NCBI RefSeq assembly: GCF_001194135.2
Contig: NC_068998.1
Coordinates: 49,242,651 to 49,291,113 of the forward strand
Source: Octopus bimaculoides
Taxonomy: Eukaryota
Length of the DNA stretch: 48,463 bases
Direction of reading: 5' to 3'
The translations under genes were made by a program, and so were the position numbers. The notes under the pieces are model-generated. The model had not been told where the DNA came from. It worked only from the letters and a program-made list of their open reading frames with translations, and did no database searches. Below, in pieces: positions 244 to 45,135 of the stretch (position 1 is the first letter of the stretch; the number at the start of each line of letters is the position of its first letter).

Positions 244-1565
244 AACTTTCGACGAATTTATGAACTGCTTCAAGAGATATGCGCTTGTTTGCTTAGATCA
301 TTATAAATTAATACATTTCAAGAGATGCCCGGTAAGTAGCTTTCATTCTCTTCCTTATATTTCCAGTAAAAATGAGCGACTGAGAAATTAACGATTCAAA
401 CAGTTTTGTTTTATTTAAAACATCTAAACAATCATTAATTTTCCTTACTTCACTATTGAAGGAAGAATCGAGAGAAGAAAGCGCAAATTATATTTAGTTA
501 CGATTTTCTTTTCTTTCAATTGAATACTAAATAATGGGGCATAGTAGGTACCGCGATGAAATAAACGTAATGAACCTGAAAATCTATATTGTTTTGTTTG
601 TGAGATTTCTAATCGATTGTAGCATTACGCCTTCTATATTCAGTAGAGGATAATTTTTGACATGGGAATATGACTGAAAATCTATTATTGGCTTTTCACA
701 ATAATTCAACATATTTTACAGAGTACTCATCCGCCAGAGACGGATTTGTGCAATATAGTTGGAGTAAGCAAAACATTTCTATTGCCGCCGAGTCTTCAAT
801 ATATGACAACGATTTCGATGTCAATTCACTGCAATACCCTCGCAACATTCATGTTTTAAACACCGCTCTGTATTTGTTATTACTAACATAGCATGGTAAA
901 CCATTTCAATATGGCTACAATAACGGTAACATAGGCATAAAATATAATGCAAAGCCTCCGGAACGCAAATGGGCATATTATAACGTCCTAAATAAAATAG
1001 AAGTGTTCACAGTAAAATAAACGCGTGAGCTATGTACTAAATATTCCTTGTTTGGGAATGTTAAAAGATGGTTTCAATGTAAGGGCAGTTTTAGCAAATT
1101 TCATTAAGAAACCGCGTAGTCACAATAACATACAATTTCACATTAAGCATAGGAATTAGAATTATGAGAATGAGCTGATTGTTTCATAAGACGAATGTGC
1201 TAGAGTTATCCGTCCAGGTATATTTTGAATATATTTTAATAGTGTACATATGTATAATCTTCATAAAACATATGATATAATATTTATGGCGTTACATGCC
1301 GGTCGCAAATAAAATGATGTGTATGCTTGATTAATATATTCTGTGTCTATATAATCGAAAAACAAAAGCATAGGCCATTCGAAAATTAATGGAAGTAATA
1401 TGAATAGCAGAGTAAAACGTCTCACAAGTAAAACGGTCCCCTAATTCACATTATATTATTGTTTTTTTTTTGTTAAATTTCGAATAACGAATCTTTTTTT
1501 CTATTTACAGCAGCCAGCCAGTATTCGGAGCTGCTATTGTAACTCTATTACTCACACATACATAA
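244..1565 (+). CDS. Paralog A (5'-partial, exons 3-5) of a 6-Cys putative GPI-anchored small protein family
   Basis: Exon 3 244-331 (ttccag|...|gtaagt) = TFDEFMNCFKRYALVCLDHYKLIHFKRCP. Exon 4 722-763 (ttacag|...|gtaagc) = STHPPETDLCNIVG. Exon 5 in the family frame from the AG at 1516-1517: 1518-1565 = PVFGAAIVTLLLTHT*. The first AG (1509-1510) gives QPASIRSCYCNSITHTYIIIYVFIMAL* (1511-1594). Exons 1-2 lie upstream of the window. Confidence 0.8.
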
Positions 1566-2194
1566 TAATTTATGTATTTATTATGGCTCTATAAATACGT
1601 TTGTGTCGTAATAACAAGATTCTAATATTACAAGAGGTCGACTTCACTGCAGATGTCTACAATTTCATACGTGACATTGAGGATATCTAATAATGTACTA
1701 CATTGTATGCTTTAAATATAGATTAAAATATCTTTCTATTTCAACGACTTTTACTGCGTCAGTTTTTGTAATTTTCAAATTGTTTTAAATTCAATATTCC
1801 AAGTATTCACTCGGATGAAAATGGTGCCATACAAGCAGAATCAATAATTGTAAGAAAGGAAGAAATTGTTTTACGTTTCACTGTAAGCCTGAAATTGAGC
1901 ATCAATTAAGATTTAGCATTATGGATCGTGAAGCATAACTTAATAGAAATACTACAATAAGTAGGCCCACACGAGATACTATGACATATATTTTCGAAAT
2001 AAAATCTCTTACGACAATGCATACATTTGAGTGCGAGTCATTAAACGGCACGGTCAGGGATTGGAAAGTATTTGGAAAATAATTCTTCATATATAAAGAT
2101 GTGATACAGTTCTATATTTAAGAGATGAGGAATTATTTACATTATTTACATTATCTACATTTGACGGATATTCGTCCTCATCTTGTTTGTTGTT

Positions 2195-2240
2195 AACACA
2201 ACGTTTCGGCTGATATACCCTCCAGCCTTCGTCAGGTGTC
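2195..2240 (-). ncRNA. Minimal type I hammerhead ribozyme motif
   Basis: Reverse complement reads GACAC-CUGACGA-A-GGCUG(10-nt loop)CAGCC-GAAAC-GUU-GUGUU: helix I 5 bp, helix II 5 bp, palindromic ACGU helix III. Confidence 0.72.
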
Positions 2241-3392: not shown

Positions 3393-3512
3393 ATGCTTAC
3401 AGCACCTAGGTTTCCCAAGCGGTCACCCATCTAAGTACTCACTAGATTCGACGTTGCATAACTTCGGTGATCGGACGAGAACCGGTGCTATCAGCGTGAT
3501 ATGGCCACAAAC
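3393..3512 (-). pseudogene. 5S rRNA pseudogene (full length, ~120 nt)
   Basis: Reverse complement GTTTGTGGCCATATCACGCTGATAGCACCGGTTCTCGTCCGATCACCGAAGTTATGCAACGTCGAATCTAGTGAGTACTTAGATGGGTGACCGCTTGGGAAACCTAGGTGCTGTAAGCAT matches the metazoan 5S consensus. It has several substitutions, a weakened helix I and no oligo-T terminator. Confidence 0.88.
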
Positions 3513-3979
3513 AAGATGCTTTAGATGCTTTATTTAAATGCTTTACATTTCTCCACGCCACCTAACATTTTCTAAAGTATAATAAAGTGTAACATAAATC
3601 GGTAATGCTTTCAGCGACGTTGAACGGTCAGAAATATATCACGTTCTTCCTTAATAAAATGGAGACATAAAGACCATTCAGACTGAACACATTGTACATG
3701 TAATACTAACTCCTTCAACGCTGTACTGGTACAAACATCTATCACATTTTTATGGAAATACTATTTCCTTGGTCACTCTACAGCAATAAAACTTGAATAT
3801 ATATCATGATATAACATGGCATAAATGAATTTTACAACCCTACCTCGTCACTTGTTGTATGATATCCTATATGATATTAAATTATCAAAGAAATACCATG
3901 TGTACCAAGAAGAGTTATACCGATAACTAAAAAGCAATAGGAAACATATAGATATAGAGGTAAGATACGTCGGCAGAAT

Positions 3980-4043
3980 TTGAAGAGTTCATCACGAAAT
4001 TACACGATGATATATGGCATATTCATTTTCCTTATCATTTCTA
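3980..4043 (+). pseudogene. Extra (relic or alternative) signal-peptide exon 1 upstream of paralog B
   Basis: Reads (TTG)KSSSRNYT-MIYGIFIFLIIS|gtaatt. It has the same 64-nt length and phase as the B and C exon 1, an intact second ATG at 4007, and homologous intron-1 sequence to ~4150. Confidence 0.7.
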
Positions 4044-4176
4044 GTAATTAGCTATATGATAATTTTAATTAATATCTATGAGCAGAATATAGAAACGATA
4101 TAAATGATGTGTTAATACGACTCATCTTTTTCTTACTCATTTTCTCTCATCAGGCATACACACATGCACACATACG

Positions 4177-4246
<70 letters not shown>

Positions 4247-5090: not shown

Positions 5091-5095
5091 CGAAT

Positions 5096-5318
5096 ATGAA
5101 GACTTCATCACGGAATTACACAATGTTATATTCTATACTTATTTTCTTTCTCATTTCTCGTAAGTAGCATTAAGATAATTATTTCTGAATTTTCATTAAT
5201 ATTTGTGCGTCGAATATAAGTGATGTAGTAATAGAGTTAATCTGATTCATGTTTTTCTTACTGATATTCTCTCCCCATGCATACACACATGCATACATAT
5301 GTAAGCATTATATGCATG

Positions 5319-5355: not shown

Positions 5356-6650
5356 NNNNNNNNNNNNNNNNNNNNNNNNNNNNNNNNNNNNNNNNNNNNN
5401 NNNNNNNNNNNNNNNNNNNNNNNNNNNNNNNNNNNNNNNNNNNNNNNNNNNNNNNNNNNNNNNNNNNNNNNNNNNNNNNNNNNNNNNNNNNNNNNNNNNN
5501 NNNNNNNNNNNNNNNNNNNNNNNNNNNNNNNNNNNNNNNNNNNNNNNNNNNNNNNNNNNNNNNNNNNNNNNNNNNNNNNNNNNNNNNNNNNNNNNNNNNN
5601 NNNNNNNNNNNNNNNNNNNNNNNNNNNNNNNNNNNNNNNNNNNNNNNNNNNNNNNNNNNNNNNNNNNNNNNNNNNNNNNNNNNNNNNNNNNNNNNNNNNN
5701 NNNNNNNNNNNNNNNNNNNNNNNNNNNNNNNNNNNNNNNNNNNNNNNNNNNNNNNNNNNNNNNNNNNNNNNNNNNNNNNNNNNNNNNNNNNNNNNNNNNN
5801 NNNNNNNNNNNNNNNNNNNNNNNNNNNNNNNNNNNNNNNNNNNNNNNNNNNNNNNNNNNNNNNNNNNNNNNNNNNNNNNNNNNNNNNNNNNNNNNNNNNN
5901 NNNNNNNNNNNNNNNNNNNNNNNNNNNNNNNNNNNNNNNNNNNNNNNNNNNNNNNNNNNNNNNNNNNNNNNNNNNNNNNNNNNNNNNNNNNNNNNNNNNN
6001 NNNNNNNNNNNNNNNNNNNNNNNNNNNNNNNNNNNNNNNNNNNNNNNNNNNNAAATATTTTCAAGTTGATTATTCTTTGGATTTACATGTAGTCAACGCA
6101 AAGCAACTAAAATCTGAATATCAAGAAATATTTCTTTTGTTATTTGCATCATTTGCGTTTAATGTTTGCTCAAAATTCCTCAGCAGTTGCGAATTTCTTT
6201 TTTTTTATTACCGAAAACTATGGTTTGTAACATGTTTATAGAGCTGTATTTTGGCTCGAAAACCGGTAAAGAGGGGGATTATTCTAGTAACCCATTTCGT
6301 CCATTCCTCGAGTGTCCAATCCATGGTATCAACTCAGTCCTTTAAAGTACCCTGGTACTGAGCTGGGGCCTGATTTTGAGGGCAATGAACTGCATGCGTT
6401 CGTATGGTAGATCGTCTCTAAGTTGAAGTAAATATGCGAAGTCACAATACCATCGGTGAGGAATTGTTCAGTCGATCTTTTTCGTGAATACAAGTACCCT
6501 AATACAACACTTCCATATCTACGTATCTAGCTATCATCTATATGGGTGTCTATCTCACACTTCATGACTCTACGTATACATGCATATACACACCCATGCG
6601 AGCGCGTACACACGCACACACACATATACTGAAAGAGGGAGAGAGAATGA

Positions 6651-6701: not shown

Positions 6702-8116
6702 AGGACAGTCAATTACGCGGGTAGAAAAATTAGATATAGTAAATATAATATAATAGTTTGGCCATGAAGTTCGACGATTCCATCTTCGAATTAACTTCTC
6801 TGTATTAAAATATCAAATGTAAGAACTTCTTTACCTTGATGATGGGGTCACATCTTATGGTATCTTGATTGCATTCATTACGACATATATTGACCTGAAA
6901 TACATCTACCAGCATTAACATGTCACTAAGCCTCCAGATTTTCGTCTTATGCCACCAGTTTTCTCTTTAGATTGTACTCTGTGTTAATTGGATCTATGAA
7001 TAGAAATATGTATATATCTTTTCTCAAATTTTCATTGTTTGAAGGTCTCAATTTTTTGTTTGGTGTCAATTTTCATGTATACATATATATACATAATTTA
7101 TGTGTCATGCGCAAACATTACCAATCATAAACGTGATAAACAAAGGGAGGCTGTCGCCGAACACCATCACGTATCGGATTCAACAATCACAAATGTGATG
7201 AAGGAGGACGTTCGATATATGGCACGTGTACTGTGAAGTACAGCAAAGAGAATGGAAATTGTTTGATCCGTGACAAGGGGCAAAAGTCATAAGAGAAATC
7301 ACAGACTGTTATGTACAGCTCCGGATACACCCTGAGAGAAATGCACAATGAATGTGATAGATTCAACGGTCATGAATAACCAATGTCACGTCATCTCAAA
7401 TATTCCATCAGAGTCCTAATAATTATGCTGGCGTCTTCGTTGAGATGTTGAAGATGATATTGAATCCCTGGATGAATAAAGTAAGCTCATTCTCACAATG
7501 ACTCCCAGGGATATATGTAACGCCTAACAAGTGAAATTCAATCCAACACGATTTTACGTTTGAAGCATGTTGAATGGGAGACAAATCGACATTCTCACAA
7601 TTTCATAAATTTCTAACAAAATTCATCAAAAAACTAAATTCTATCTATTTTCATCGCCCTCACAATTCCCCGAAATCGAAAATCAAACAGCCATATTTAG
7701 AATGTGTATCATACGAATGCCTAACAAACACAAATGTGTGTTGTTTAACAAAAAAATTATTTTGCAATAACCATTTGATATTTTCAATCCAGACCACACA
7801 TTTTTTAGGTGTCAGCTCAGTGGGACAATTTTGCTTTGGCGAGGGAATGCGTGTGTGTCCTGCTCATTTTAAAGACCCTAGACATAAGTACGAATTCTGC
7901 AGGTATGTGTATTTACATATATATATATATATATATATANNNNNNNNNNNNNNNNNNNNNNNNNNNNNNNNNNNNNNNNNNNNNNNNNNNNNNNNNNNNN
8001 NNNNNNNNNNNNNNNNNNNNNNNNNNNNNNNNNNNNNNNNNNNNNNNNNNNNNNNNNNNNNNNNNNNNNNNNNNNNNNNNNNNNNNNNNNNNNNNNNNNN
8101 NNNNNNNNNNNNNNNN

Positions 8117-8174
<58 letters not shown>

Positions 8175-10174
8175 TTCTGCCCCCTCATTGGAGAAGATAC
8201 ATTACAAACTGTGTTAGGTAACTCTTAGGATGTTTAAGAAGCTCCGAAATGCTAATATCTGGATAATATTATATCTGACATAGATATTAATTGTTTTGTG
8301 TCGTTGTAGAACTACGTAGTTCAAAAGTGATTTGGGTTTTAATCATTGAATTGATTTTGGTCTCATCTGCTTATAACTCTGAGTTACTTGAAAGTGGAGT
8401 CTGATTAAAGTTTTAATTAAGATATAAATAATACAATAATGCCCGAATGTATAATTTCCATTCATAGTCTTACCTTGCAGAAACTTCGAGAACTTTAATA
8501 AGTGTTTCCAGAAGGGATCCGCAAAATGTATACGTGAGTACAAACGAAAACATTCTTACGTGTGTTTTGTAAATATCTTTCATTATCTTACTTATATTTT
8601 GCCTAAAATGAGAGACCGAGACAAAAATGATCTAAAACTAATCGTTGTATTGTAATAATATTAAAAAAAAAACATTAGATTTCCTAAAGTCACCCTTGAA
8701 GGAAAAGAAAAACAAAAAAACGAGCAAAGGATGAATATGTTATTTAGCTACTGTCATATTTTCTTTCAATCCAACTTTAAATAGCATGGTATACAATGTG
8801 CCGTGATAACATAAACGTAATGACGGTCATGGTTACAGTATCTTTGGTAGCCTCTGACTGTCTATTTTGTCTTAGATGCAAGATTTTTAATCGATGATAA
8901 TATTATCACTGCTATATGCAGTAGTGAAAGTTAATCTTTCACTTGGATATATGTCTGAAAATCTATTACTGGTTATGAAACGAAATTTTCACAAAAATTC
9001 AACCTATTTTTCAGACTCCTAAACCGTTGCCGAGCGCCTCGTGCGACATTGTTGGAGTAAGCAAAATATTTCTATTTCCGCTGTCTTCAATATATAATAA
9101 CCATACCGATTTGAAGTATATGTCTTTTTTTTTAATTCACTACAATTCTGTTGCAACATTTCTGCTGTTAACGTAGCTGTGTATTTGTTATAAGGGACAT
9201 AGCATTGTAAACCTTTTCAATAAGACTACAATAAAAATAACATCAGCATAAAACATAATGCAAAGCCTGCGGAACAAAACGGCATATTATAACGTCTCAA
9301 CTGAAATAGAAGTGTTCACAGTAAAAGAAATGCATTAGATATGAAATACATTCTCGATAATGGGGTGCTCGATTCATGATAGGGACACGCTAGATCTATT
9401 CCCGCAGGAAGATTTTGATTTTATTTTAATAACATACGCATAATCTTTATGATAAATATGATGTAATTTTGATGGCGTTACATAAACATTACAAATAAAA
9501 ATATTGCAATGTTTAATGACAATGCTGATTATTACGAGAAAGCATTGGAAAGGAAAGTTCTTAAGAATGGAGCTCTGTAGGTTCCTGTGACGGAACAAGA
9601 ATTTCATAGTAACAGGTCCGTTAATTCCCGTAGAAAAAGAAATAGTTGTAAGACACAGTATAGCCCGGTTATTCTACATCAGCAATTATCATCATCCGTG
9701 AGCGTACATTGGGTTTAACTTCCATAGTATTAAACTTACGTTAGATCACGAAATCTATAAAAGTACAGGATAAAGGCACTGTGTCGGATATATTCTATTC
9801 AGCGTACCTACCCCAAAACATCAATTTTAAGTTAATCAAAGGTATCTGCAATCATATTGCAAGTTTGAAGAACATAGCATAGACTGCGGTCTTATAAAAG
9901 AATCTACCTTAATAATGACATAAAACTATATGTGGACTGATTAATATATGTTGTGTCCATATCATTAATGAAAGCATAAGCCAAATGAAAATTAATGGAA
10001 GTGATAAGAGTAGCACAGTAAAAAGTCTTACCTAATTAACATTAAATGATAGTTGAAATAAATGTTGGAATAACGAATTTTTTCTTCCATTTACAGGTTA
10101 GGAGCGAGTCAGTATACGCAACTGCCGTTGTAACTCTATTACTCAACGTACATAAGTATTTATTATGTCACTGA
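5096..10174 (+). CDS. Paralog B, complete 5-exon gene, 121 aa signal-peptide, 6-Cys, putative GPI-anchored protein
   Basis: join(5096-5159,7809-7902,8481-8568,9015-9056,10097-10174). All introns GT-AG, phases 1,2,0,0. Protein: MKTSSRNYTMLYSILIFFLISRVSSVGQFCFGEGMRVCPAHFKDPRHKYEFCRNFENFNKCFQKGSAKCIREYKRKHSYVCFTPKPLPSASCDIVGVRSESVYATAVVTLLLNVHKYLLCH*. TATA box at 5061. Confidence 0.88.
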
Positions 10175-11151: not shown

Positions 11152-12243
11152 TTATCTAATTAAATTATTACATCTATTTTCTTCTCTCTCACTATATATA
11201 TATATGTACTTATGCTATATTTTCTATATGTGTCTTCCGAAATACAAATCCACAAAGTATAACACCAAACCTAAGTCCCGCTAAAATGCCTGCACATACT
11301 GAATGAGTATCAAAACACGTTTTACTTAATTCTTTTAGCATTCTGTGAACAGAATTTTATTTTCATTCTCATAAAGGAAATGTCTTAAAGCTCATTATCT
11401 TTCGTATATACATGTTAATTATGTAAAAGTCTGAATGAAAATGGAATGACCTTTAAAAAACATCGTCATTTGTGCAAAACCTGTACGTGAAAGGCAAAAA
11501 AAAAAAAAAAAAAAAAANNNNNNNNNNAAAGAATATTTAGAGCCAAATAACAACATGGTCCAGAGTTAACTACAATTGGACAATTATCATTTACATTTCA
11601 AAATGTAGACTTGTGTTAATTGAGTATTAATCATTTAGATTTGTAGCAATAAATTTCCCGTAATTTAATTGCTATCAGTACAAATTATAAAAAAATATTT
11701 GTGTGCTCACATCTAAAACCCAAAATAAACTGATTATTATCCCTCAAATATTGTCCATTCTATCTGTTATTTCGTTCTAATTCATGTATTTTGAGATTTA
11801 AAAAACCGAAAATAAGAGGAAAAGTCGCAGTCCAATTTCCGCCGAGGTTGAATTTTATTAGCTCGTTTGAGGCCTAATAATACATGTACAAGTGAAGTGT
11901 TGGAGTAGATATAACGGAATGTTTATCCAATCCAGGGAAATTGGTTACATCGTCCTAAAATTCGAAACGAATATTGAGAAGGCTTACATTTCTGCGTATT
12001 ATCAAAAAGTTTTCTTAAATACTGCATGAATAGTTAATGTATTCAGTTAAATTCAGGCCGTACACGTTGTATATGTAATATTGACTGCTTCCACTATGCA
12101 CGAGGACAGACATACGTCACAGTTTTATGCAAATTATCTTTAAGACACCTGCCTCGTTGGTGACTGCACAACGACAAATAATGTAAATATATTATGATAT
12201 AGCGTATCAAAAACGAAATTTACATGCCTTCCTTGTCAGTTGA

Positions 12244-12302: not shown

Positions 12303-12515
12303 ATGAAATGTTCGTCTGGAAATTACACAATGATATATTCTATATTTATTTTCTTTCTCATTCCTCGTAAGTTTCTATATGATAATTTTTTCGGAATTTT
12401 CATTAATATATTTTTGTTGAATTTAGATACGCTATAAATGATGTAGTAATATAGTTAATCTGTCTCATCCTTTTCCTACTCATTATGTCTCCTCATACAT
12501 ACCTACATACATACA

Positions 12516-12551
<36 letters not shown>

Positions 12552-13129
12552 TGTATGTATATATATAGATATATATACATACTTATGCCAAAATATTTTT
12601 ATATATCTTACAGAAATACGAACCCACAAAATATTACACCAAAATATAACCTTGTTAAATGGATGTACACATTGAATGAATATTAAAATGCGTTTTTCTT
12701 CAATTTTTTTTTGAATGCAGCAATCAGAATTTCATTTTCTTTCGCATAAACGAACTGTTTTCAAGTTGATTATCTTTCGGATCTACACGGTGTAGTTATA
12801 AGAAGGAATTGAAATCCGAACATCACAAAATATTTCTTTTGGTATTTGAACCATTTGCGTTTAATATCTGCTCACAATTCTTCGGCTGTTGCACACTTTT
12901 TGTAATATTTTGCGTGCGTTCGTATAATAAGTTGCCCTTATAAGTTGACGTAAACGTGACAAGTCAAAATACCGTCTGTGAAGAATCGTTCAATTGATGT
13001 TATTCTTGAATACACGCAACACAATGTAACTCGTGCATATCTATGTATTTACTTATGTATTCTATATAGGTGTCTATCTCACACTTCGTCAGTCTCTCTA
13101 CACATTCAAGCGTGCTCACACACATATAT

Positions 13130-13205
<76 letters not shown>

Positions 13206-14060
13206 GGTAGAAAGAGATGGGGGAGAAGGAGAAGCAATGATGCAGATAAAGAAATTAGATATCTCAAATATAACATAATAGTTTGAGTATCAGCTAAATC
13301 CCTGAAATATAAAATCTCTTCCCTGATGATGAGGTACCGTCTAATACTATGTTGATTGCACCCCTTACGGCACATATTGAGATGAACAACACCAACCAGC
13401 ATTATCACGCATCTCCAAGCCTCCAGAAACAGATTTTGGGCTTATAATTTTCTCTTTCGTTTATACTGTGTAAGCCTGGTTAATCAATATAAATATCTTA
13501 TACTTGTTCTTAAATATTCATCGTCTGAAAGTCTCCATCTTTTACTTTCTCTCTATTTCCATGTATACATATATACATATCACGTGTTTCATGCGCAGTT
13601 ATGTACATATATATTAATACATGTAATATACATGTATACGCCAACCCTCACACATATGTGTGTGTGTCTGTGTGTGCGCGTGTTTCCGTGTTTGTGTACG
13701 TTGCTAACATTCAATCATACCGTAAAAGTGCAAATGAATTTCCCCTCTATGTTTCCATACATTACTTACAGTATTTTGAAATCCCCAGACATATCCAATC
13801 CCCGATCAGAATTATAATGAAATCTCATCATTGTACGCACAAATCCCCAGAATCGAACATTAAAATACCATATATATTCTCTGTGTCATATAATTGCGTA
13901 ATAAACAACATTCAATTCTGCAAAGGTCATTTCATAATTTCCTATAAATCTTAAATTTTTTTAGGTATCAATGCAATGACTGTGGATTGCATTAAAGAGG
14001 CAAAAAAGCATTGTCCTAGTTTTGTGCATCCTGATAAAACTGATGAATACTGCAGGTACG

Positions 14061-14093
<33 letters not shown>

Positions 14094-16253
14094 ATAATTT
14101 TATTGTTAGACTTTAACAAATAATTATACAATTATGTATTGTCAAATATTTGCTTTTATAAAACGTTTATCTTTATAGAAAGTCTAAATCTTTTTAGATG
14201 AATCCATAGCAATGAAAATAAATATTTCTTTTGACTATTATTCATAATAATGATTTCAATGACAGTAATGTCGATGGAGAGTGTACGTCGATTACATCGA
14301 CTCCATTACTCAACAGCTATTTTTTTGATCGACTCAAAGGGATGAAAAGTATAGAATTTTAACTCAGAATGCAAAGACAGACGAAATGTTGCTACGCATT
14401 CCGTCCGGCGTGATAGCGATTCTATCAGCTTGTTCTACATGTTCAATTATATAAAGACAACCGTGCAGACTTACGTTTATTTCTTTTTTTTCATTTCAAT
14501 TTTAAATCGTTTAATTTTGCTATAGTAGTTCAATTATATAAAGACAACCGTGCAGCCTGACGTTTATTTCCTTTTTTTCCATTTGTATTTTAAATTGTTT
14601 AATTTTGCTATCGTAGTTTATATATTTCTGAAAGGTTAATCTCTGGATAATATATCTGGGAATAGAGTTGATATAAAAATATAAATAAAACAGGAATACT
14701 TGCACGTTTAGAATTCATTCATATTTCTACTTTGCAGAACTTTCGGGGAATTTGAAAAATGCTTCAAAACACTTGATATATATTGCTTTGAACGGTTCCA
14801 AACCATACATTTTCATAATTGTTTGGTAAGTAGCTGGCATTGCATTCGAATTATTTGTCTTAAACAAAAAGTGACAGATCTGAACTATGTAAAAAAAAAC
14901 ACAAAGTTTTATTTTAAGAGTATAAACAATGAAATTGCCCTTGAAAGAACTAACGAGCAAGAAAAGAAAGAATATGTTATTTAGTTCCGTATTTTTTTTA
15001 TTTTCTTTCAATTCAATACTAAATAATATGGCGTAGTACGTACTGCGATAACGTAATCGTACCAAACGGTCGTAGTTGCAGTATTTCATAAATTCTCTAA
15101 TAATCTACTGTGTCATACTTGTAAGAGTTTTAATCAGTCGTAGTATTATGGTATCTATATTCGATATTGTTCGATGAATTCCATATAGGTATATGTCTGA
15201 AATGGCATTATAATTTTTCACAACAGTTGAACATTCTCTTTCAGACTGTACCGAAGAGGAACAGCTTCCGCAACACAGTTTCTACTGGTCCTGCGTCTTC
15301 AGTATGTGAATATAGCTATATCAATTTCAAGGATACGTCTTTTAATTCGCTTTCATATCATTTAAACATTTCTGTGATAAACGCAACTGTTTTTTTTTTC
15401 TGTTGTTATCAGTGAGATAGTATGGTAACCTATTTCATTATCGCTACAAAAACAGTAACATAAGCATAAATTATACTGCAAAGCCTGTACGATGTACAAA
15501 GATATATTTTCTGTAGATACATTGTAATGTATCTAATATCTAATTACAACAGTCGAATTTGTAATATATACGAATATATACCATATATACGTTTCAATGT
15601 GAATTATAGGGTTTTTAGTAACGAGAGTGTGTCGTTGTACTACAATTTGTAGACAAGTTATCTAAAATCCTGTTGTAATTACAATAATATCATTGTTAGT
15701 TGAAACTACGTTATACATAGATGGTTTGAAAGTTGAGCTAGTTTTTGATGGAGTTTCTCTATAAGCCTCCACTGAAGTCTAATGCTGGCTCCGTACCGTT
15801 TACATAATGCAGTTCTATATTTTAGAGATGAGGAATTATGTACATTATTTACATTTGACGGACATTTGTTCTCATCTTGTTTGCTCTTAAATATAGAACT
15901 GGACTTTATAAGTTAATGAAAATTAGTCTCTAAGCATAACTTATATGGTTAAAAATATAACAGACTACGATTTGATGAGGTATCTTAATGTATCTACAAC
16001 AATTACTCGATACATGAGAATATATGATATATCATTAATATATGATATATTCACAACACCCTAGAGGTCATAGGCCACGTGAATAATAATGGAAGTTCTA
16101 GGAGTATAATTGCTTACCTAATTCGCATTAAATGTTTGTCGGCATAAAACTTTGAATAACCAACATTTCTTCCATTTGCAGCCAGCCAGTATTCACAACA
16201 GCCACTTACTATTCGCAACTGTTGTTGTAATTCTGTTACTCACACATACATAA
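12303..16253 (+). CDS. Paralog C, complete 5-exon gene, ~123 aa
   Basis: join(12303-12366,13965-14055,14738-14825,15245-15301,16182-16253). Protein: MKCSSGNYTMIYSIFIFFLIPRINAMTVDCIKEAKKHCPSFVHPDKTDEYCRTFGEFEKCFKTLDIYCFERFQTIHFHNCLTVPKRNSFRNTVSTGPASSPASIHNSHLLFATVVVILLLTHT*. The exon-4 donor used here is the non-ancestral GTATGT at 15302. Confidence 0.85.
13133..13203. repeat. (GA)n microsatellite (homologous tract at 6652-6696 in intron 1 of B)
   Basis: Direct reading; the flanks are homologous between B and C. Confidence 0.9.
14280..14430 (-). mobile_element. Diverged SINE fragment
   Basis: gtcgattacatcgact...gacagacgaaatgttgctacgcattccgtccggcg matches the same family in reverse. Confidence 0.55.
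14441..14616. repeat. ~87-bp tandem duplication in intron 2 of paralog C
   Basis: gttcaattatataaagacaaccgtgcag...aattttgctat occurs twice. Confidence 0.85.
15810..15901. mobile_element. Collapsed remnant of the same Penelope-type terminal repeat, in intron 4 of paralog C
   Basis: Matches 2108-2190. Ends CAGTTCTATATTT...AAATATAGAACTG form a 13-bp inverted repeat; the hammerhead part is deleted. Confidence 0.6.
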
Positions 16254-18942: not shown

Positions 18943-19131
18943 ATGAAATATTCCATAATCATTTTCCTTCTTATTTTCCGTAAGTAGCTATATGATAATT
19001 ATCTCTGAATTTTTAATATTGTTTGTGTGCAGAATATTAATATGATATAAGTGACATTGTAATATATCCATTCTGTCTCATCGTTTTCTTTCTCACTCTC
19101 TGTGCTTATACATACACACATGCATAGACAC

Positions 19132-19196: not shown

Positions 19197-20386
19197 CGTG
19201 TGTATATATACATACATACATAGATACAAAAGTCACCGGATATCATTGAGATAAAACGTAATTTTCAAGTTAGCGGCCAAAGAAACAGAATTCAGCTCCA
19301 CTGCACTTCGTGGAGATAAGTCTTGTAGCCCCCCCCCCTCACATACAAAAAATAAAGATAAGATTACAACCGGGACTGAAATTTTCTTTGCTTGTAGGTC
19401 ACCAAACCTTTGAGATTTACGGCTTTGCACCCATCTGAATGTAACGTTGAAACAGTGGAAAATTTATGTACGTTTATATGTTTCGTGGGGAATCAAATAT
19501 TACGTAGTAGTGCATGCAGCTGAATATCTCAAACTCTTTGAACACACACACACACACACACACCATCAGCTATAATATCACTTATACATACAGCTCTGTA
19601 AAAAAAACGCACTCAGTGTGATATTGAAAACCACGGCAGCGCTTTGAGAACATTGCTATCTATATATGCTAAAAACGTGCTTCGAAGAAGCTTTCAAACA
19701 CAAACAGAAATAGACATTTATCAGGAGAATGGATCCTGAATAACAATTGAACCAATCAAAATATTACCATCAACAGCATCCACATTCAACAACAATAAGA
19801 ATGCTCGGGTTGGCAAAACACTTGCATGAAAACCTGCATTAGCAACCAAAGTGTGGCGGATGAAGACTGGACAATAAAAAAAAAAATCAAACAGAACTCG
19901 AAAATGTTCTATTCATATATCAACAAGCATAAGACTGCTTTCTCACCGCTGATCGATAATATCAGAATTCTCCAATACGACGCTAATGAAATGACAGAAT
20001 TACTGCAGAAACAATACAGCCCTGTCTTAAGTGATTCCAATGATAATGACACAAGCGATCTCAACGAATTCAATCCTCAACACATTATCTCGGGTATAAC
20101 TTTTACTGCCTCAGACAACAATAAATGAAACCAAGTACTATTCTACTATAGGCTCTGATAAGTTCTCCATAAGTATCCCACAGGAATGTAGACCCTAACC
20201 GACCTCTGGAGAATTTCGGTTTAGATTCTGAATATGTGCCGAAACAGTTATCATTTTGATCTGTCATTCCGGTCTTCAGAAAGGGAAAAACGGTTTATCG
20301 CCGATATTACACAGTTCGCATATCATCAAAGTGTTTCAAAGGTCAGTGGGTGTGATCAAGGACAACTGGCTCTCTGGAGAGCATTG

Positions 20387-20417
<31 letters not shown>

Positions 20418-22424: not shown

Positions 22425-22459
<35 letters not shown>

Positions 22460-22860: not shown

Positions 22861-22904
<44 letters not shown>

Positions 22905-26120: not shown

Positions 26121-26862
26121 CGATTAAAGTGACGAGAGAATACCCAAAGTCCTTATGTACAGCCAAGTTGATACTATGCCCAACATAAACATTATGTCTG
26201 ACAAAAAGAGAGTGTAGATAGCCGGATCCTCATACTTTGAAACCGTTGGGAGAGTCCTTCATATATATNNNNNNNNNNNNNNNNNNNNNNNNNNNNNNNN
26301 NNNNNNNNNNNNNNNNNTTATATATATATATATGTATATATACACATGAATTTTTTTTTAATACATATTTTACCTGTGAATTTGCGTGTGTAAACTGGGA
26401 ATGCATACGACGAGTTTCTCTGCCTTAGGTATACAGAAAACACTCGGCGAGAAATGGAAGAAAGAAGAAAAAAAAATAATAATGATAATAACATCGAACA
26501 CAAGGATGATAAATCGATATCTGAGAGAAAGAGAGAGTGAGACACTGTGTTCTTCCACTCTACAAAACAAGATACTTCGTTTAGGATTTACTGAGAATCA
26601 CCAGGCGTTTGACATTCAGAACTGGAAGAAAACTCTATTCTCATTTTTGCGCAATTTAAAAGATATATAGAAATCCTAACTGAAGGAGTGAAGCAAGTAA
26701 AGTTGATGCTAGATATGTATCCTAGCTATCAGACCTTCTGATGTAATAATATGAGGAAGAAATGTAGAAGAGGGCAAACATTTGCGAGTGGGTATTTGTC
26801 GAAAGTGGTTTAAAATTTTAAAAAATGAGACGAGGACTGAAGAGGGGTAATATAATTTAGAT

Positions 26863-27198: not shown

Positions 27199-28262
27199 AC
27201 TTTAGGGAAAGTGTTTCAGTGAATATTAAACTGGGGGTCATTTTACCGTGGAAGTACCCATTTTATCGTTGGAGTAACTTTTGAACAGAAAGGCCTTTGA
27301 AGAGATGAACTGGGTATTGTTCAGAAAAAATGAAATGAAAGTGATTAAAATTTAGGAGTGAGATTTGGGTTGAGTGGTTAAGAAGGAAGAGAAAGGGGCA
27401 CAAAAGGGAGATTCGGATTAAAGGGATGAGTTTTAAGGAGAAACGTAATAGTTGGGCGCTTACTACCTCACATATTCGCGTGCCCGCGTGCGCATGCGTG
27501 CACTAACGTTATGTCGAATATTTCAGTATATGAAATACATACGCACGTACGAATATGCATATTTTCATAAGTAAAACGGAAGATATAAACAAATCACAAA
27601 GCTAAGGAAATATATAAATAAAGCGTTGAAAAATTGTAAAACGGAAGTTCTAAAGGGATCACATAATCAAGAAAATATATAAAGATAGCTTGAACAAGTA
27701 ACTGTTATAAATACATTAAAGAGGTTCAAATGTGTGGGTGCTGATGTATGTATATATATGATATATACATATATATGCATATATATGTGTGTTTGTATGT
27801 GTGTATCTATCTATCTATCTNNNNNNNNNNNNNNNNNNNNNNNNNNNNNNNNNNNNNNNNNNNNNNNNNNNNNNNNNNNNNNNNNNNNNNNNNNNNNNNN
27901 NNNNNNNNNNNNNNNNNNNNNNNNNNNNNNNNNNNNNNNNNNNNNNNNNNNNNNNNNNNNNNNNNNNNNNNNNNNNNNNNNNNNNNNNNNNNNNNNNNNN
28001 NNNNNNNNNNNNNNNNNNNNNNNNNNNNNNNNNNNNNNNNNNNNNNNNNNNNNNNNNNNNNNNNNNNNNNNNNNNNNNNNNNNNNNNNNNNNNNNNNNNN
28101 NNNNNNNNNNNNNNNNNNNNNNNNNNNNNNNNNNNNNNNNNATATATATATATATATATGTATATATATGATATATACATATATATGCATATATATGTGT
28201 GTTTGTATGTGTGTATCTATCTATCTATCTATCTGTTTCTCTCTGTGCAACCTATGCACACA

Positions 28263-28897: not shown

Positions 28898-29025
28898 TTT
28901 ACATTTGTTATTTACATTTACGCTATCACTTCGGATATTTTTTCGTCATGGTACTCACGAGGATCTGAAAGACATCATCTGCAGCAATGAACTTTTTGGT
29001 GGGTACGTTGTACTCATGTGTGGAA
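28898..29025 (+). mobile_element. Short inverted copy of the Helitron PIF1 junction fragment
   Basis: Reverse complement of 30679-30805 with only a few mismatches. Confidence 0.75.
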
Positions 29026-29430
29026 ACCTGGGGTCGATTTGCTCGACTAAAACCGTTTAAGTCGGTTCTCCGGCATGGCTGCAGTCAAATGACCGAAACA
29101 AGTAGAAGAATAAAAGAATAACAGACTGTATTATTGACATTTAATATTATGTATGCGTAGGCAATATATTTCTGTCATATTTCAAATTATATTTGATACA
29201 CATTTCGCGATGAAGAATGTAAAATAATCAGTTACTTCTTTTAGCTTTAAAGTCAAAGTAAAACCAATTCGGTTGCTTTGAATTTGCAAGTATATATAGC
29301 AAATGAAGTAAACAGTATAGTTACACCTGCAGATAATGACCCAAATGTTCTCGGAATAAATAAACATTTGAAAACAAATTACCATGTAGTATGTCATTCT
29401 AGAAGTTTATATATCTCCTAGTTTAGTTCT

Positions 29431-29524: not shown

Positions 29525-35845
<6,321 letters not shown>

Positions 35846-39500: not shown

Positions 39501-42500
39501 ATGAAATATTCTGCATATATCTTGCTTCACATATTTGGTATGTAGACATATGACAAATATTCTCCATTTTTTTTCTTCCTACTTGTTAATGTAATATATA
39601 TATATAAATATGTGTGATATAGTTGTCTATCTGTTTTGTCAATACTTTATGTTTGTCAATGGCATTTAAGGAGAAGGGGAAGTTGTGGTGTGTGAAATGT
39701 GTAACTTGCTTTGTTAACTGGGTTTTTTCCCCGTTACTCAACCCCCGCTTGTAACGCTTCCACATGATTAGTTGAAGAGAAATGGGAAGAAAACAAAAAG
39801 GACAGAAATAATTGGGTAAAGCGAAGAATGAGAGAGAAACAGGGATATTTTTTGTATTAGGTTTATAAGATTGTGCATAAAGTGTATAAAGTGTATAACG
39901 TGTATAAAGTGCATAAAGTGTATAAAGTGTATATCTTAAGTATATTGATTAATCATCGCATTCGAATTGCTTTCACTTGTCAATGATTAGCAAATGCGCG
40001 AATATCTTTTGATGTAGACGCAACACAGGTTATGTATTCCGGTTCTTGGGGTAAAGTTTTCAGAAATAGCACAATAACTTTACCATTAATTCTATGAAAT
40101 ATTCAGGGGCTCCGCTAATTTTCCTTTTTTTATTTCTACACTCAGTTACGGTATCCTAACGTCTTCGAAAGTATTTGTCCCAGAGCATTTGATGACACTT
40201 GAAATGTATTTTATGTAAATGCTCAGGGGAAAAGACACCACATACAGTGATTTTGAGATGGCTATAATAAGATACTGTGAATGAGTATATATTCTGATTC
40301 TTAAAAATCCATTTCAACTTGTACTGTTGTTTTAATAATTCAAATTGTGATTATTTATTAAGCATACAGCGAGTCACGCTGTATAAGTCTTTACAGGAGT
40401 TAAAGTTTATGGTACCTGTATGCTGTCTTATCCCGATGTGATTACGAGATGTTCGAAGAGATGTAGATACTACATTGTTTCACCTCATTCAGTTATATAG
40501 CACAGCTGCTTCACATTTAGGTACTTGTAGGTGTCGAGGAAAATCTGATTATAAACGTCTTTTCGTATAATTTAATCATACTTTTGCTTCGAATATTTGA
40601 AAATGAGAAAAAGTTTATCGCAAGTAACATAAATGATTTTTTTTTGAATATCAGAAAAAAATGTATTACACACACGTGCACACACATACACACATACACA
40701 CACACACAGACTTATATGTATTTACGACACGTATGTAATAGATATACCAACAGAGATAATTCAGTTCTTGTTCCGTAGGTTAATAGAGCAACGAATATTC
40801 TTAATCTATTTTCGAATATTATTGACATCTCAGAATTATCTACATTTGACCATTATCTTACCAAACCCAGAGAATCAACACCCTCATCCAATCTATTTTT
40901 ATACTCAATAATTCTAGTAACTAAGAGAACTGGCGGTAAAATTAGCATGTCGTAAATTGTAATACTTTAATTAATATCAAGGGCTTGCCCACAGGAATCT
41001 AAGCACATATACTACAATATCAAGGTATGTATATTATAATATATTTAACATATATAATAAATATAAAAGCAAAGCTAATCTAGCTATTTCTCTGTAGATT
41101 GGGAAAACGTTGACCAGCTTTAATCGGTTTTCGTAACTTATTGAGTTCTCATCAAAGTTGTCTACATGTATGCAGGTACGTATGTATGTATACATGTATG
41201 TATGCATTCATGCATGTACGTATGTATGTACGCAAGCATGTATATATGTATCTATATAATTACCGGCAAAAAATAAAGTTTTTCCCGAACACTAATTTTG
41301 GACAGCAGCTTTATATTCTGAGGTACACTTGTTATCACTGTATACATGCTTGTTGTGTAAGTGGAAGAAGACACTTGGGTTATTTTAAATATTATTGAGA
41401 ATATCAAGTCTTCAAACTAAACATTGAGATATAATATAATATAATATAATCATTGAGGTATAATATTACCGCTTCTGTGGTAAGCTACTTTCCGAATACA
41501 ATTGTGGCTTCCATTCTCTCTTTCCATCGAAATTCGCTGCTAATATAATTAGTCTCAAAATCAAACTACTCTATCTAGATTAAAACTTAGATATAGCATG
41601 TGAGCACGTTATGTACACACTCTTCAATTTATATGTTTAAATGAGTTGATTTGTAATTTGCAAAGACAATAAGAAGTAGCACATGTAGTAGTTTTTGTCT
41701 AAGATCATTGTGGGGCTCCGTGTATTTCTTACAAAAAATATACGTCTGAGTTTCCTTTCCAAGATTTATCATATCTAAAAAAAGTATTTTTTTCATTAGA
41801 TCATTCTATTTAATGTAGCTGCAATTTCATTGTAAACTGTGACTTTACCATTTAGTATAACTTACTACTCTACCACTTCTTGAGATTTTATAACTAACTA
41901 TTTTGGTTGTTGGAAATCAGTCACTGACTGCCACTTCGTTTAGAATATATCGGTGGCAGAAGCGGATCTTAGCTATCAATCCATCGCGTAGGTGCGCTTG
42001 GCTGATGTGAGCCAAATAGCTCGAAACTGGACGGTAATATATATATATATATATANNNNNNNNNNNNNNNNNNNNNNNNNNNNNNNNNNNNNNNNNNNNN
42101 NNNNNNNNNNNNNNNNNNNNNNNNNNNNNNNNNNNNNNNNNNNNNNNNNNNNNNNNNNNNNNNNNNNNNNNNNNNNNNNNNNNNNNNNNNNNNNNNNNNN
42201 NNNNNNNNNNNNNNNNNNNNNNNNNNNNNNNNNNNNNNNNNNNNNNNNNNNNNNNNNNNNNNNNNNNNNNNNNNNNNNNNNNNNNNNNNNNNNNNNNNNN
42301 NNNNNNNNNNNNNNNNNNNNNNNNNNNNNNNNNNNNNNNNNNNNNNNNNNNNNNNNNNNNNNNNNNNNNNNNNNNNNNNNNNNNNNNNNNNNNNNNNNNN
42401 NNNNNNNNNNNNNNNNNNNNNNNNNNNNNNNNNNNNNNNNNNNNNNNNNNNNNNNNNNNNNNNNNNNNNNNNNNNNNNNNNNNNNNNNNNNNNNNNNNNN

Positions 42501-45135
42501 NNNNNNNNNNNNNNNNNNNNNNNNNNNNNNNNNNNNNNNNNNNNNNNNNNNNNNNNNNNNNNNNNNNNNNNNNNNNNNNNNNNNNNNNNNNNNNNNNNNN
42601 NNNNNNNNNNNNNNNNNNNNNNNNNNNNNNNNNNNNNNNNNNNNNNNNNNNNNNNNNNNNNNNNNNNNNNNNNNNNNNNNNNNNNNNNNNNNNNNNNNNN
42701 NNNNNNNNNNNNNNNNNNNNNNNNNNNNNNNNNNNNNNNNNNNNNNNNNNNNNNNNNNNNNNNNNNNNNNNNNNNNNNNNNNNNNNNNNNNNNNNNNNNN
42801 NNNNNATAATGCCGGTTTTTTATATTCTTTTATTTTTCAAAATAAACATAAGCAAAGTTCTTTCTTAATCTAAAATATACTCTCCCTCATTTTCTACAAT
42901 GGCTTTCCATCTACCTGGTAGACCTGTAAGGCCCCTCTTCCAAAATTCACCTGTCAGCGGCGAAAAATACTCCTCCAGTACTGTTCTGACCTCCTCTACA
43001 ATATTCATATTTTTTCTGTCTAAATGGTTTTGAATACTGTGGAATAAATGACAATCTGACGGAGCAATATCCGGCGAATATCGTGGGTGGGACATCGTCT
43101 TCCATTCAAACGGATCGCACCCTCTCCAACTTTTAGTACATACAATTGAAAAAACTGCATTATTTATGGGATGACCCAATATATTCATTTTCGTTTACAC
43201 AAATGAATTTAAAATAACTCACATGGAACAAGTGGTGGTTGCTCTACCAAATCTGTTACACACTGCAATGGTTCTTTTTTCACAAGGGGAGTGTGAGGTT
43301 TACTTATATTTATAATTAAATAGAATAATTAAAAGATGCAAATTTTGTTATTCAACAGTCAGACTTTTGGCTTATTTTAAAATGAAATTGGTTTAGTTTT
43401 ACTAGCATTGACCTTACGGATTGTTTCCTCCAAAAGGTCAATTTATGGGTAATATTCTATCTGCCACTGAGTTTACAATTTACCGCAGTGATGCGTTTTA
43501 TGAAAGAATTACGTCCTTGCGGAGTGATTTGAATGTCTCGTTTGTTGTTTGATAACTGCGTATTATATTTCGGTTATTTTACTTACAACAATGTATCACA
43601 TGGAAGGCGATTCTGACCGCTTAATAGACAAAATATTACAACATAAACAATATAATTAAAAACGTGATTGTTTGAACAGTACCTGAATGCATAAACAGTA
43701 CTTGAATGAATAATTTTCAACTGTATGTTTATATTTCAGATACTACTACAAGTTACACAATTGTTTCTTTCTTGTAAATCGCGACTGTATGACATATTTC
43801 GCATACTTGCACGTTCATAGGTGCTCGGTAAGATATTTGCATTTCTTAATTGTTATTTAGCAAAATTATGAGATACTGAATATAACCACTGCATTAATTA
43901 GTTTCTTTAATTTACGATTGTCCTACTACAACAATTTTGAAAAATGATTGTTTAAATGTAGCAAGTTTTTTTTTCTTTAAACAAAATGCAATATAGTATA
44001 ACATAGAACGCGCCGACGATGACAGAAGATGTTCAAACAGAAACGTGTCTTCTATTCCAGTAGTGCTCTATTATTTCTTTTAATATCTATGACCATTCAT
44101 AGAGTATCACTAGAATGATTTTTAATACGATCGTAGTATGAAAGTATCTGTTGAGGCGCAATGGTCCAGTGGTTAGGGCAGCGGACTTGCGGTCATAGGA
44201 CCGCGGTTTCGATTCCCAAACCAGGCGTTGTGAGTGTTTATTGAGCGAAAACACCTAAAGCTCCACAAGCTTCCGGTAGGGAATGGTGGCGAACTCTGCT
44301 GTACTCTTTCACCACAACTTTCTCTCACTCTTACTTTCTGTTTCTGTTGTGCCTGTAATTCAAAGGGTCAGCCTTGTCACACTGTGTCACGCTGAATATC
44401 CCCGAGAACTACGTTAAAGGTACACGTGTCTGTGGAATGCTCAGCCACTTGCACGTTAATTTTACGAGCAGGCTGTTCCGTTGATCAGATCAACTGGAAC
44501 CCTCGACGTTGTAAGCGACGGAGTGCCAACATGAAAGCCTCTATATTCAAATGACAACGATTAATTTCAAATTGGTATATTTCTTAAGATTTACCATTCG
44601 ATTTCCATGTAAATTTCCACAGTATATTAACATTTTGTTTTTAGTTTACAACGACAACGAAATCGAAAATGTCAGGTAAAGGAGTTGGAGTAAGTAACAC
44701 GTTTCTCGTTCCTTTGAATAACCAATGCATTTCTACAATTACTTCATTATGAATGATAATTCGTGTAATTCACTGTAATATTATTGAAACCTTGCTGCAG
44801 GACACGCAGTTGCAAATTTTCAGCACTGAATTTGTCTTCAATAACACTGACATAAACTTAACCCATACCGCCAGGCCTCCCATAATATAAACGTTATAAC
44901 TAATAAAAACATTACTTTATACTATGTCTGTAATTTCATTGTTATTTAGTTACAAGGAACTAATCTAAAATATTGATGCAATTTTATTAATAGTACTTCC
45001 GCACTAACGGAAATATTTGAGCTTACTTAACTTACATCAAATATTTGAATAACCATATTTTTCTTCCATTTCTAGGTGAAACGACTCTCATTATTCAGTA
45101 CTGCGGTTGTAACTCTATTACTCATGCATATATAA
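39501..45135 (+). CDS. Paralog F (exon 2 not visible, probably in gap 42056-42805)
   Basis: Exon 1 39501-39537 = MKYSAYILLHIF(G)|gtatgt. Exon 3 43740-43827 = YYYKLHNCFFLVNRDCMTYFAYLHVHRCS|gtaaga. Exon 4 44645-44689 = FTTTTKSKMSGKGVG|gtaagt. Exon 5 45076-45135 = VKRLSLFSTAVVTLLLMHI*. AATAAA at 45135. Confidence 0.8.
39873..39932. repeat. 9-bp tandem repeat (GTGTATAAA)n
   Basis: Direct reading. Confidence 0.85.
42862..43260 (-). mobile_element. Mariner transposase C-terminal fragment
   Basis: WKTMSHPRYSPDIAPSDCHLFHSIQNHLD...FWKRGLTGLPGRWKAIVENEGEYILD*, the mariner YSPDLAPxD motif. Confidence 0.88.
44150..44530 (+). mobile_element. Full-length tRNA-derived SINE, in intron 3 of paralog F
   Basis: Head GAGGCGCAATGGTCCAGTGGTTAGGG...GGTTTCGATTCCC. 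Imperfect 12-bp TSD atgaaagtatct/atgaaagcctct. Orientation is opposite to the copy in D. Confidence 0.85.

Follow-up and report, generated by a model that had tools for sequence, protein, structure and literature searches.

A tandem family of small six-cysteine, putatively GPI-anchored proteins in Octopus bimaculoides

Introduction

At ~49.24-49.29 Mb of Octopus bimaculoides chromosome CM046618.1, six units built from short exons follow one another head to tail on the + strand (genes A to F), and the locus raises the question of what kind of small, cysteine-rich proteins these units would encode and what such proteins might do. The stretch of DNA analysed here, referred to as the window, is 48,463 nt long, and its position 1 corresponds to position 49,242,651 of the chromosome record (assembly GCA_001194135.2), an offset established by aligning a neighbouring locus directly at the sequence level. 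An initial annotation made from the letters of the window had described an unrecognised family of small signal-peptide proteins with six cysteines and a putative glycosylphosphatidylinositol (GPI) anchor. The analysis presented below favours, with a probability of roughly 0.6, a family of GPI-anchored binding modules at the cell surface that is lineage-specific and diversifies rapidly. Gene expansions peculiar to a lineage, mostly of obscure function, are a known trait of cephalopod genomes, and this family is a tractable case among them: a compact and confidently predicted fold, the architecture of membrane display and an unusually strong sign of diversification make it a candidate for octopus-specific recognition or receptor modulation.

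Gene plan and reality of the six copies

Comparison of six-frame fragments together with a scan for cysteine patterns identified six related short open frames on the + strand, and self-BLAST shows that the unit is repeated head to tail with a period of ~6-10 kb (exon positions are given in Table 1). Exon 3 measures 88 nt in five copies and 97 nt in D, each time preceded by the acceptor YAG and followed by the donor GTAA; the open frame common to the six copies starts at its second base and places three cysteines at aligned positions, so that intron 2 is in phase 2 and intron 3 in phase 0. Exon 2 (94 nt in B and 91 nt in both C and E, between AG and GT, with Cys1-3 in B) begins with two bases of a split codon, and the preceding intron is therefore in phase 1. 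Exon 1 comprises 37 nt from an ATG conserved in every copy and is followed by the donor GTAAGT or GTATGT; B and C possess an extra in-frame ATG 27 nt upstream, leading to an exon 1 of 64 nt, and in E and F a stop codon is found just upstream. Exon 4 is 42, 42, 57, 30, 39 (or 30) and 45 nt long in A to F, respectively, and exon 5, with 48-78 nt of coding sequence, begins after a conserved TTTACAG. The intron phases derived from these exon lengths are 1-2-0-0, and genes B, C and E share the cysteine framework C-x7-C-x12/13-C-x8-C-x7-C-x11-C. Exon plan, phases and cysteine spacing agree almost to the base with those proposed in the initial annotation, whose array ends, 244 and 45135, correspond to the start of exon 3 of A and the end of exon 5 of F. 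Its description of A, D and F as exon-3 halves stands insofar as none of them has a readable exon 2, but D and F do have an exon 1 and that of A lies upstream of the window.

The spliced model of gene C is identical (100%) to the 123-aa RefSeq "uncharacterized protein LOC128249755", for which the RefSeq start lies nine codons upstream, and the gene spans 49,254,953-49,258,903 on CM046618.1, which is exactly the length of window 12303-16253. For the remaining copies, 24 family members, among them C but not A, B, D, E or F, served to build a profile of the exon 3 peptide, with which every six-frame fragment from the window and from four other loci was screened. The profile matches the predicted exons of E (E-value 6.8e-11), D (2e-5), F (1e-4), A (8e-3) and B (0.06), and nothing elsewhere in the window scores comparably. 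Because this profile falls exactly on the predicted exon 3 positions, a chance origin of the six copies is excluded, and the tandem array of real genes put forward at the outset is borne out. All six copies keep open exons 3, 4 and 5, the AG acceptors, the cysteine positions and the position of the stop codon. The GT donors are also kept, except for the canonical exon 4 donor of E, where GTAAGC is mutated to ATTAGC; since only weak GT donors are left, after 30 or 39 nt, splicing of this exon is uncertain. A, B and C carry the polyadenylation-type hexamer ATTAAA at +157 to +175 nt past the stop codon; in D, E and F, an AATAAA overlaps the stop codon. The conserved placing of these hexamers fits exon 5 as the terminal exon.

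Family membership and taxonomic range

An exhaustive HMMER profile scan of 1.84 billion representative proteins (E <= 1e-3) yielded 27 relatives of 77-140 aa, exclusively Octopus proteins, in keeping with the lineage-specific family that had been proposed. Twenty-six of them come from O. bimaculoides, where about 25 loci encode them; with one exception, these loci are on the 55.56-Mb chromosome CM046618.1, that of the window. The remaining relative belongs to O. vulgaris. The former are named "uncharacterized protein LOC...", the latter "hypothetical predicted protein". Word-indexed protein searches with gene C or with the six-copy and 28-member alignments are insensitive here and recovered almost only gene C and a few paralogs. 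The alignment of 28 sequences has Cys3 to Cys6 without exception and Cys1 and Cys2 in nearly every member, and it shows that the members share their termini, MKYSIFIFLLI..GVA at the N-terminal and ..TAVVTLLL.H. at the C-terminal end.

Annotated family members flank the window on either side, LOC128249756 at 4.5 kb upstream and LOC128249757 at 4.6 kb downstream, and further members, one of them on the opposite strand, are found past these loci. The six copies of the window are a slice of a larger tandem array on one O. bimaculoides chromosome. In O. vulgaris, the relative (OX597831.1, 19.25-19.27 Mb) is a single copy in 24 kb, with no second one detected by the exon profiles, whereas O. bimaculoides has one copy per 6-10 kb. 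None of the 28 members reaches any Pfam threshold, and a literature search with 12 LOC identifiers of the family (including LOC128249755) and for octopus orphan, cysteine-rich or GPI-anchored families returned nothing relevant. The family had been called unrecognised, which holds for Pfam but not for gene annotation, as about 25 loci including C are already listed in RefSeq as "uncharacterized". Judged from the proteins scanned, the family is restricted to Octopus and uncharacterised, and consists of ~25 annotated loci plus unannotated copies.

Predicted fold and targeting signals

With 24 mature domains as input, those of B and E not among them, AlphaFold2 returned a model of high confidence (pLDDT, the predicted local distance difference test, 94.4; pTM, the predicted template modelling score, 0.76) with helices at residues 3-10, 20-34 and 39-54. 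Prediction from the six window copies was confident for the core only, with block pLDDT values of ~87-91 over residues 31-80. The mature domain is thus predicted to be a three-helix module of ~56 residues, in which the six cysteines presumably form three disulfides. A Foldseek search with the trimmed high-confidence domain found no match in PDB or BFVD, so that the structural comparison suggested at the outset gave a confident fold without a counterpart in either database; a search of PDB with the full-length model returned only noise (E > 2.9), because the signal and tail helices dominate that model.

Signal and GPI layouts were scored in the 28 family sequences by simple layout rules. Most of these sequences have a best N-terminal 9-mer with a hydropathy above 2.5 and, at the other end, a hydrophobic stretch of 11-15 residues followed by at most 4 residues and preceded, 6-12 residues before, by a triplet of small residues (xSS, NSG, NGS, DSS or similar). 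Within the window, genes B, C, D, E and F satisfy the GPI layout rule, and A does so only with a short spacer. Both layouts, as originally described for the window, therefore recur across the family by rule; the C-terminal one would correspond to a textbook GPI-attachment signal, and GPI-anchored display of the family products at the cell surface is likely.

A second type of C-terminus is also found. In the RefSeq isoforms P0005 (..VGISTAFLLPLCLQYITT..) and P0008 (..VGVSKIFLLPLSLQYMTTNSI) the exon 4 donor is read through and the hydrophobic tail is absent. Beyond exon 4 of A (764-860, +) and B (9057-9170, +) the read-through frame is open and alike in the two genes (VSKTFLLPPS..LQYMTT and VSKIFLFPLS.., respectively), and it resembles the C-termini of these two paralog isoforms, which suggests that intron retention recurrently gives rise to an isoform whose C-terminus differs.

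Divergence of exons and introns

Among the six window copies, the proportion of synonymous differences (pS) exceeds that of non-synonymous differences (pN) in all 15 pairs of exon 3. As synonymous sites are saturated for most of these pairs, intron divergence was used as the neutral yardstick. Exons 1 and 5 surpass 250 nt of flanking intron in conservation, and exons 2-4 equal it or fall below it. The pattern is clearest for A and LOC128249756, with identities of 71-86% in the introns, 95% in exon 1 and 88% in exon 5, but 62% in exon 3 and 64% in exon 4. Fisher tests of exons 3 and 4 against the adjacent introns gave p = 1e-4 for this pair, 3e-6 for A and B, and 5e-4 for B and C. By the Nei-Gojobori method, pN is 0.32 and pS 0.56 for exons 3 and 4, compared with 0.034 and 0.27 for signal and tail, and the non-synonymous divergence of the mature domain lies above the intron divergence (~0.21). 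The isoelectric point (pI) of the mature domain spans 5.0-9.65 across members. Relaxed constraint is ruled out as the cause of this pattern, because it cannot push the divergence of exons beyond that of introns; the comparison rather suggests diversifying selection on the mature domain, possibly aided by conversion homogenising the rest of the unit.

Proposed function

Put together, these observations outline how such a protein could work. Exon 1 and the start of exon 2 would encode a cleavable signal peptide for the endoplasmic reticulum (ER), exons 2 and 3 the three-helix domain of ~56 residues with its six cysteines, exon 4 a short stalk rich in Ser, Thr, Pro and Asn that carries the small-residue site, and exon 5 a spacer of ~8-10 residues and the hydrophobic tail of 11-15 residues with almost nothing beyond. 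The precursor would enter the ER, a GPI anchor would take the place of its tail at the small-residue site, and the outer leaflet of the cell membrane would come to carry the helical mini-domain, where it might bind a partner, be it a ligand, a receptor or the surface of another cell. If tandem duplication recurs while selection diversifies the displayed domain and the two targeting signals are conserved, a repertoire of binding surfaces could result. From gene structure, prediction and divergence we infer signal cleavage, GPI anchoring, disulfide pairing and the role as binder or modulator; a diversified role of this kind is plausible, and the divergence of the mature-domain exons, faster than that of the introns, fits it.

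An analogy in terms of overall logic is offered by the Ly6/uPAR proteins (e.g. Lynx1 and CD59), which have roles as receptor modulators (PMC4839075). They have in common with the octopus family a small multi-exon gene, a signal peptide, a single disulfide-rich domain, a GPI signal and clustered paralogs. On the other hand, the octopus domain is predicted to be all-alpha with 6 cysteines, whereas Ly6/uPAR domains are beta three-fingers with 8-10 cysteines and a C-terminal CCxxxxCN; neither this motif nor a UPAR_LY6 Pfam match was found in the octopus family. Likewise, no Pfam match to saposin, insect OBP, GFR-alpha (GDNF) or DUF19 was obtained at E-values up to 10 with the 28 members and two consensus sequences. 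An identity with Ly6/uPAR, saposin, OBP or GFR-alpha is rejected on the basis of the all-alpha six-cysteine prediction and the missing profile matches, and the exclusions made in the initial annotation hold.

Several observations weigh against the reading as GPI-anchored surface binding modules. At E<1 the family profile misses exon 2 of B, the most divergent copy; E has no good exon 4 donor, and A, D and F have no readable exon 2. As, in addition, only C is annotated, some copies may be pseudogenes. The calls of signal peptide and GPI anchor are rule-based, and the read-through isoforms may represent tail-less, secreted products of some members. Tail and signal are more conserved than ER and GPI signals require, which could indicate another role or gene conversion. 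Finally, synonymous differences in the mature-domain exons also exceed the intron divergence (~24 sites, noisy); given small samples, saturated sites and possible mosaic conversion, the acceleration is not cleanly attributable to positive selection.

A bolder proposal, which we regard as speculative and on balance unlikely, would make the family a set of octopus-specific, positively selected, GPI-tethered three-helix modules of a "mini-RGM/neuritin-like" type, each of them a membrane-bound modulator or co-receptor for a different partner. If this were true, the partners could be, for example, BMP/GDF-type ligands or the expanded clustered receptors of octopus sensory or neural tissue, and the modules would be the helical counterpart of the Ly6 prototoxins. 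In this view the mature-domain exons might, in addition, have a locally raised mutation rate, as their synonymous sites likewise diverge more than the introns.

Alternative explanations and comparison with known families

The products could instead be secreted peptides (toxins, antimicrobials, pheromones or signalling peptides) whose hydrophobic C-terminus is a pro-region or is spliced out. A conserved signal exon combined with mature exons that outpace the introns, as observed here, is classic for conotoxin and snake-toxin genes; an invariant cysteine framework with hypervariable residues between the cysteines is a further common trait. The two read-through isoforms that lack the hydrophobic tail, P0005 and P0008, and the pI of up to 9.65 of some mature domains point in the same direction. 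Nevertheless, only one part of the gene is more conserved than the C-terminal tail, which is present with GPI-like spacing in all six window copies and in most members, no dibasic processing sites precede the tail at a constant distance, and no Pfam toxin or antimicrobial-peptide family is matched. Unlike in conotoxins and snake toxins, the conserved GPI-type hydrophobic tail argues for membrane tethering, and we consider a family of secreted peptides unlikely.

A relationship to the RGM proteins or to neuritin deserves closer comparison: the family might descend, with very strong divergence, from the RGM N-terminal domain or from neuritin, acting as a GPI-anchored co-receptor for BMP/GDF-type ligands or as a neuritin-like factor in growth or plasticity. 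RGM_N (PF06535) is the only Pfam family matched by more than one member (5 of 28), with 15.6 bits (E 0.02) for the best of them and 14.4 bits for the family consensus, both below the gathering threshold of 24.2 bits; for neuritin, a single member out of 28 matches NRN1 (PF15056), at E 0.033 and below the threshold of 27 bits. All scores are sub-threshold, and a strong match to a characterised family was not seen, RGM_N being the best. When the family profile was run against the PDB sequences, only chains of the RGM N-domain were returned (E 0.6-1.3), aligned on FC-x8-C-x7-C. Comparison with hhalign gave probabilities of only 5.7% for RGM_ND and 1.5% for neuritin, in each case over only 27-28 columns (the human neuritin sequence used matches Pfam NRN1 at 2e-39), and the Foldseek search with the pLDDT-94 model against PDB, which includes RGM_ND chains, was empty.

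In terms of architecture, the RGM N-terminal domain (PDB 4UHZ, 4BQ6 and 6Z3H) has, like the predicted octopus domain, three helices and six cysteines, and belongs to a GPI-anchored protein; three disulfides in RGM stand beside the six invariant or nearly invariant cysteines and the three AlphaFold2 helices of the octopus domain, and the central spacing FC-x8-C-x7-C is common to both. The outer spacings differ, however, the six cysteines of the RGMB sequence in PDB being arranged as C-x4-C-x22-C-x8-C-x7-C-x21-C, with x4, x22 and x21 in place of x7, x12-17 and x11 in the octopus family. The C-terminal domain of RGM is vWD-like and has a GDPH autoproteolytic site. The octopus proteins end 20-45 residues past Cys6 without any further domain and hence lack this domain, which in RGM is sufficient for neogenin binding (PMC7354924). 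Moreover, the octopus genes form a large, fast-diverging tandem family whereas RGM is a small and conserved one. Neuritin is itself a small GPI-anchored protein (PMC12715718). Neuritin/CPG15 and the octopus proteins share a small precursor, a signal peptide, a mature part with six cysteines, a C-terminal GPI signal and the C-x8-C-x7-C core, but the neuritin domain extends over ~85 residues with longer loops, compared with ~56 residues. Neuritin is a conserved gene present in one or two copies and is not known to form a hypervariable array. A short likeness in cysteine spacing between helical cysteine-rich domains can be due to convergence; the family is consequently not filed under RGM or neuritin, the likeness is architectural and may be convergent, and common descent with either seems to us quite improbable.

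The proteins could also be single-pass type I membrane proteins, for which the hydrophobic C-terminal segment would serve as anchor without GPI exchange. AlphaFold2 predicts a helical C-terminus (residues 107-121 of P0001), and the unusual conservation of the tail TAVVTLLL would fit specific intramembrane contacts; but 11-15 hydrophobic residues are not enough to cross a membrane stably, only 0-4 residues come after them, with no basic stop-transfer cluster, and the upstream small-residue site and the spacer match the GPI rule, so that we rate this possibility as very low. Lastly, it is hardly credible that most copies are pseudogenes decaying around a live gene C, with fast exon evolution as mere relaxed constraint: the isolated annotation of C, the exon 4 donor lost in E, the poor score of B against the family profile and the unreadable exon 2 of A, D and F are confronted with frames of exons 3-5, AG acceptors, cysteines and stop codons intact in six of six copies (donors too, E exon 4 apart), with pS above pN in every pair, with exons diverging faster than introns, which relaxed constraint does not achieve, and with an absent exon 2 that, at least in A and D, coincides with assembly gaps and not with deletions.

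Locus, assembly gaps and annotation

The window is AT-rich (34% GC), with many microsatellites and 11 runs of N, none of which touches an exon or a reading frame. RefSeq annotates only gene C out of the six copies, and it is the sole annotated gene within 10 kb to each side of it. Genes C and E are free of gaps. Because gaps are located in introns 1 and 2 of B, we infer the linkage of its exons. Four N runs in addition to the seven listed in Table 1 are intergenic.

In D and F, exon 2 was looked for with regular expressions and profiles in whatever sequence is readable from exon 1 to exon 3, and was not found. A (TA)n microsatellite is situated just 3' of exon 2 in B (7920-8173) and in C (14061-14089), the second gap of B begins inside (TA)n and the gap of D ends in (TA)16 (22425-22457), so that systematic breaks of the assembly at this repeat seem to be what conceals exon 2. 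As the gap of D is followed by (TA)16 in the same way as exon 2 is followed by (TA)n in B and C, exon 2 of D is probably inside that gap. Directly before the window start, where exon 2 of A is expected, there is a gap of 1585 N (19571-21155 of the upstream flank stretch L003), which probably contains it. Loss in assembly is the simplest explanation for the missing exon 2 of A and D; the case of F is less clear, its exon 2 being possibly either in the gap between exons 1 and 3 or lost. For annotation of this chromosome, it should be kept in mind that five of six copies are absent from RefSeq and that exon 2 repeatedly falls into gaps beside (TA)n.

Table 1. Exons of the six genes and assembly gaps, in window coordinates unless indicated (L003, upstream flank stretch)
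Gene	Feature	Position	Strand	Remarks
A	exon 1	upstream of window, L003 18384-18420	+	readable 2.7 kb upstream
A	exon 3	244-331	+	88 nt, TFDEFMNCFKRYALVCLDHYKLIHFKRCP
A	exon 4	722-763	+	42 nt, STHPPETDLCNIVG, AG/GT, phase 0/0
A	exon 5	1518-1565	+	PVFGAAIVTLLLTHT, stop; hydrophobic tail
	orphan seventh copy of exon 1	4007-4043	+	MIYGIFIFLIIS, donor GTAATT, 1.1 kb upstream of B exon 1
B	exon 1	5123-5159	+	37 nt, MLYSILIFFLIS + 1 base, donor GTAAGT; 64 nt from upstream ATG at 5096
B	exon 2	7809-7902	+	94 nt, Cys1-3; then (TA)n and gap 7940-8116
B	exon 3	8481-8568	+	88 nt, Cys4-6
B	exon 4	9015-9056	+	42 nt, TPKPLPSASCDIVG
B	exon 5	10097-10174	+	VRSESVYATAVVTLLLNVHKYLLCH, stop
C	exon 1	12303-12366	+	RefSeq ATG 12303; ATG conserved in all copies 12330
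C	exon 2	13965-14055	+	91 nt
C	exon 3	14738-14825	+	88 nt
C	exon 4	15245-15301	+	57 nt, TVPKRNSFRNTVSTGPASS
C	exon 5	16182-16253	+	PASIHNSHLLFATVVVILLLTHT, stop
D	exon 1	18943-18979	+	
D	exon 3	23341-23437	+	97 nt, 3-codon insertion between Cys4 and Cys5
D	exon 4	24307-24336	+	30 nt
D	exon 5	25661-25726	+	AATAAA overlapping stop
E	exon 1	29525-29561	+	MYYSIFILFPIF, GTAAGT
E	exon 2	32702-32792	+	91 nt
E	exon 3	33637-33724	+	88 nt; best profile match among copies outside the profile
E	exon 4	33883-33921	+	DHTTKKPNGSVNI
E	exon 5	35792-35845	+	VEIQPVFVTAIGTLLLV, stop
F	exon 1	39501-39537	+	MKYSAYILLHIF, GTATGT
F	exon 3	43740-43827	+	88 nt
F	exon 4	44645-44689	+	45 nt, FTTTTKSKMSGKGVG, GTAAGT
F	exon 5	45076-45135	+	VKRLSLFSTAVVTLLLMHI, stop
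B	gap	5356-6052		intron 1
B	gap	7940-8116		intron 2
D	gap	21484-22424		between exons 1 and 3
F	gap	42056-42805		between exons 1 and 3
	gap	11518-11527		intergenic
	gap	26269-26317		intergenic
	gap	27821-28141		intergenic

Other features of the window

The orphan exon 1 lies in a local duplication (3976-4178 is similar to 5092-5303) and could either serve B as an alternative first exon or be left over from the duplication. Between it and gene A, a full-length match to 5S rRNA (Rfam RF00001) is located at 3394-3512 on the - strand; it scores 94.3 bits and covers positions 1-120 of the 120 in the model. The adjacent segment 3105-3370 is 74.5% similar to 22744-23052 in gene D, and no second 5S-like copy was found beside this related repeat within the intron of D; the match could correspond to a lone 5S gene, a pseudogene or the head of a 5S-derived short interspersed element.

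Repeats are found in and around other units as well. A repeat of 382 bp, 90.8% identical between its two copies and probably a young interspersed element, occurs in opposite orientations in intron 3 of D (23810-24191, +) and intron 3 of F (44150-44531, -). A palindromic element resembling a miniature inverted-repeat transposable element, with arms ~90% complementary, is present at 2097-2480, with other copies at 34392-35033 (region between E and F) and 15807-15890. For the open reading frames 42865-43188 (-) and 30775-31242 (-), a transposon origin had been guessed and was dropped, as no Pfam match at E <= 0.01 supports it. Just 3' of gene F, the open reading frame fragment 45813-46085 (+) matches zf-RVT (PF13966) with an E-value of 3.7e-7 and is a relic of a non-LTR (long terminal repeat) retroelement. 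Exon 1 of gene E is flanked by an inverted repeat of 130 bp with 95% identity (28898-29027, +, and 30676-30805, -).

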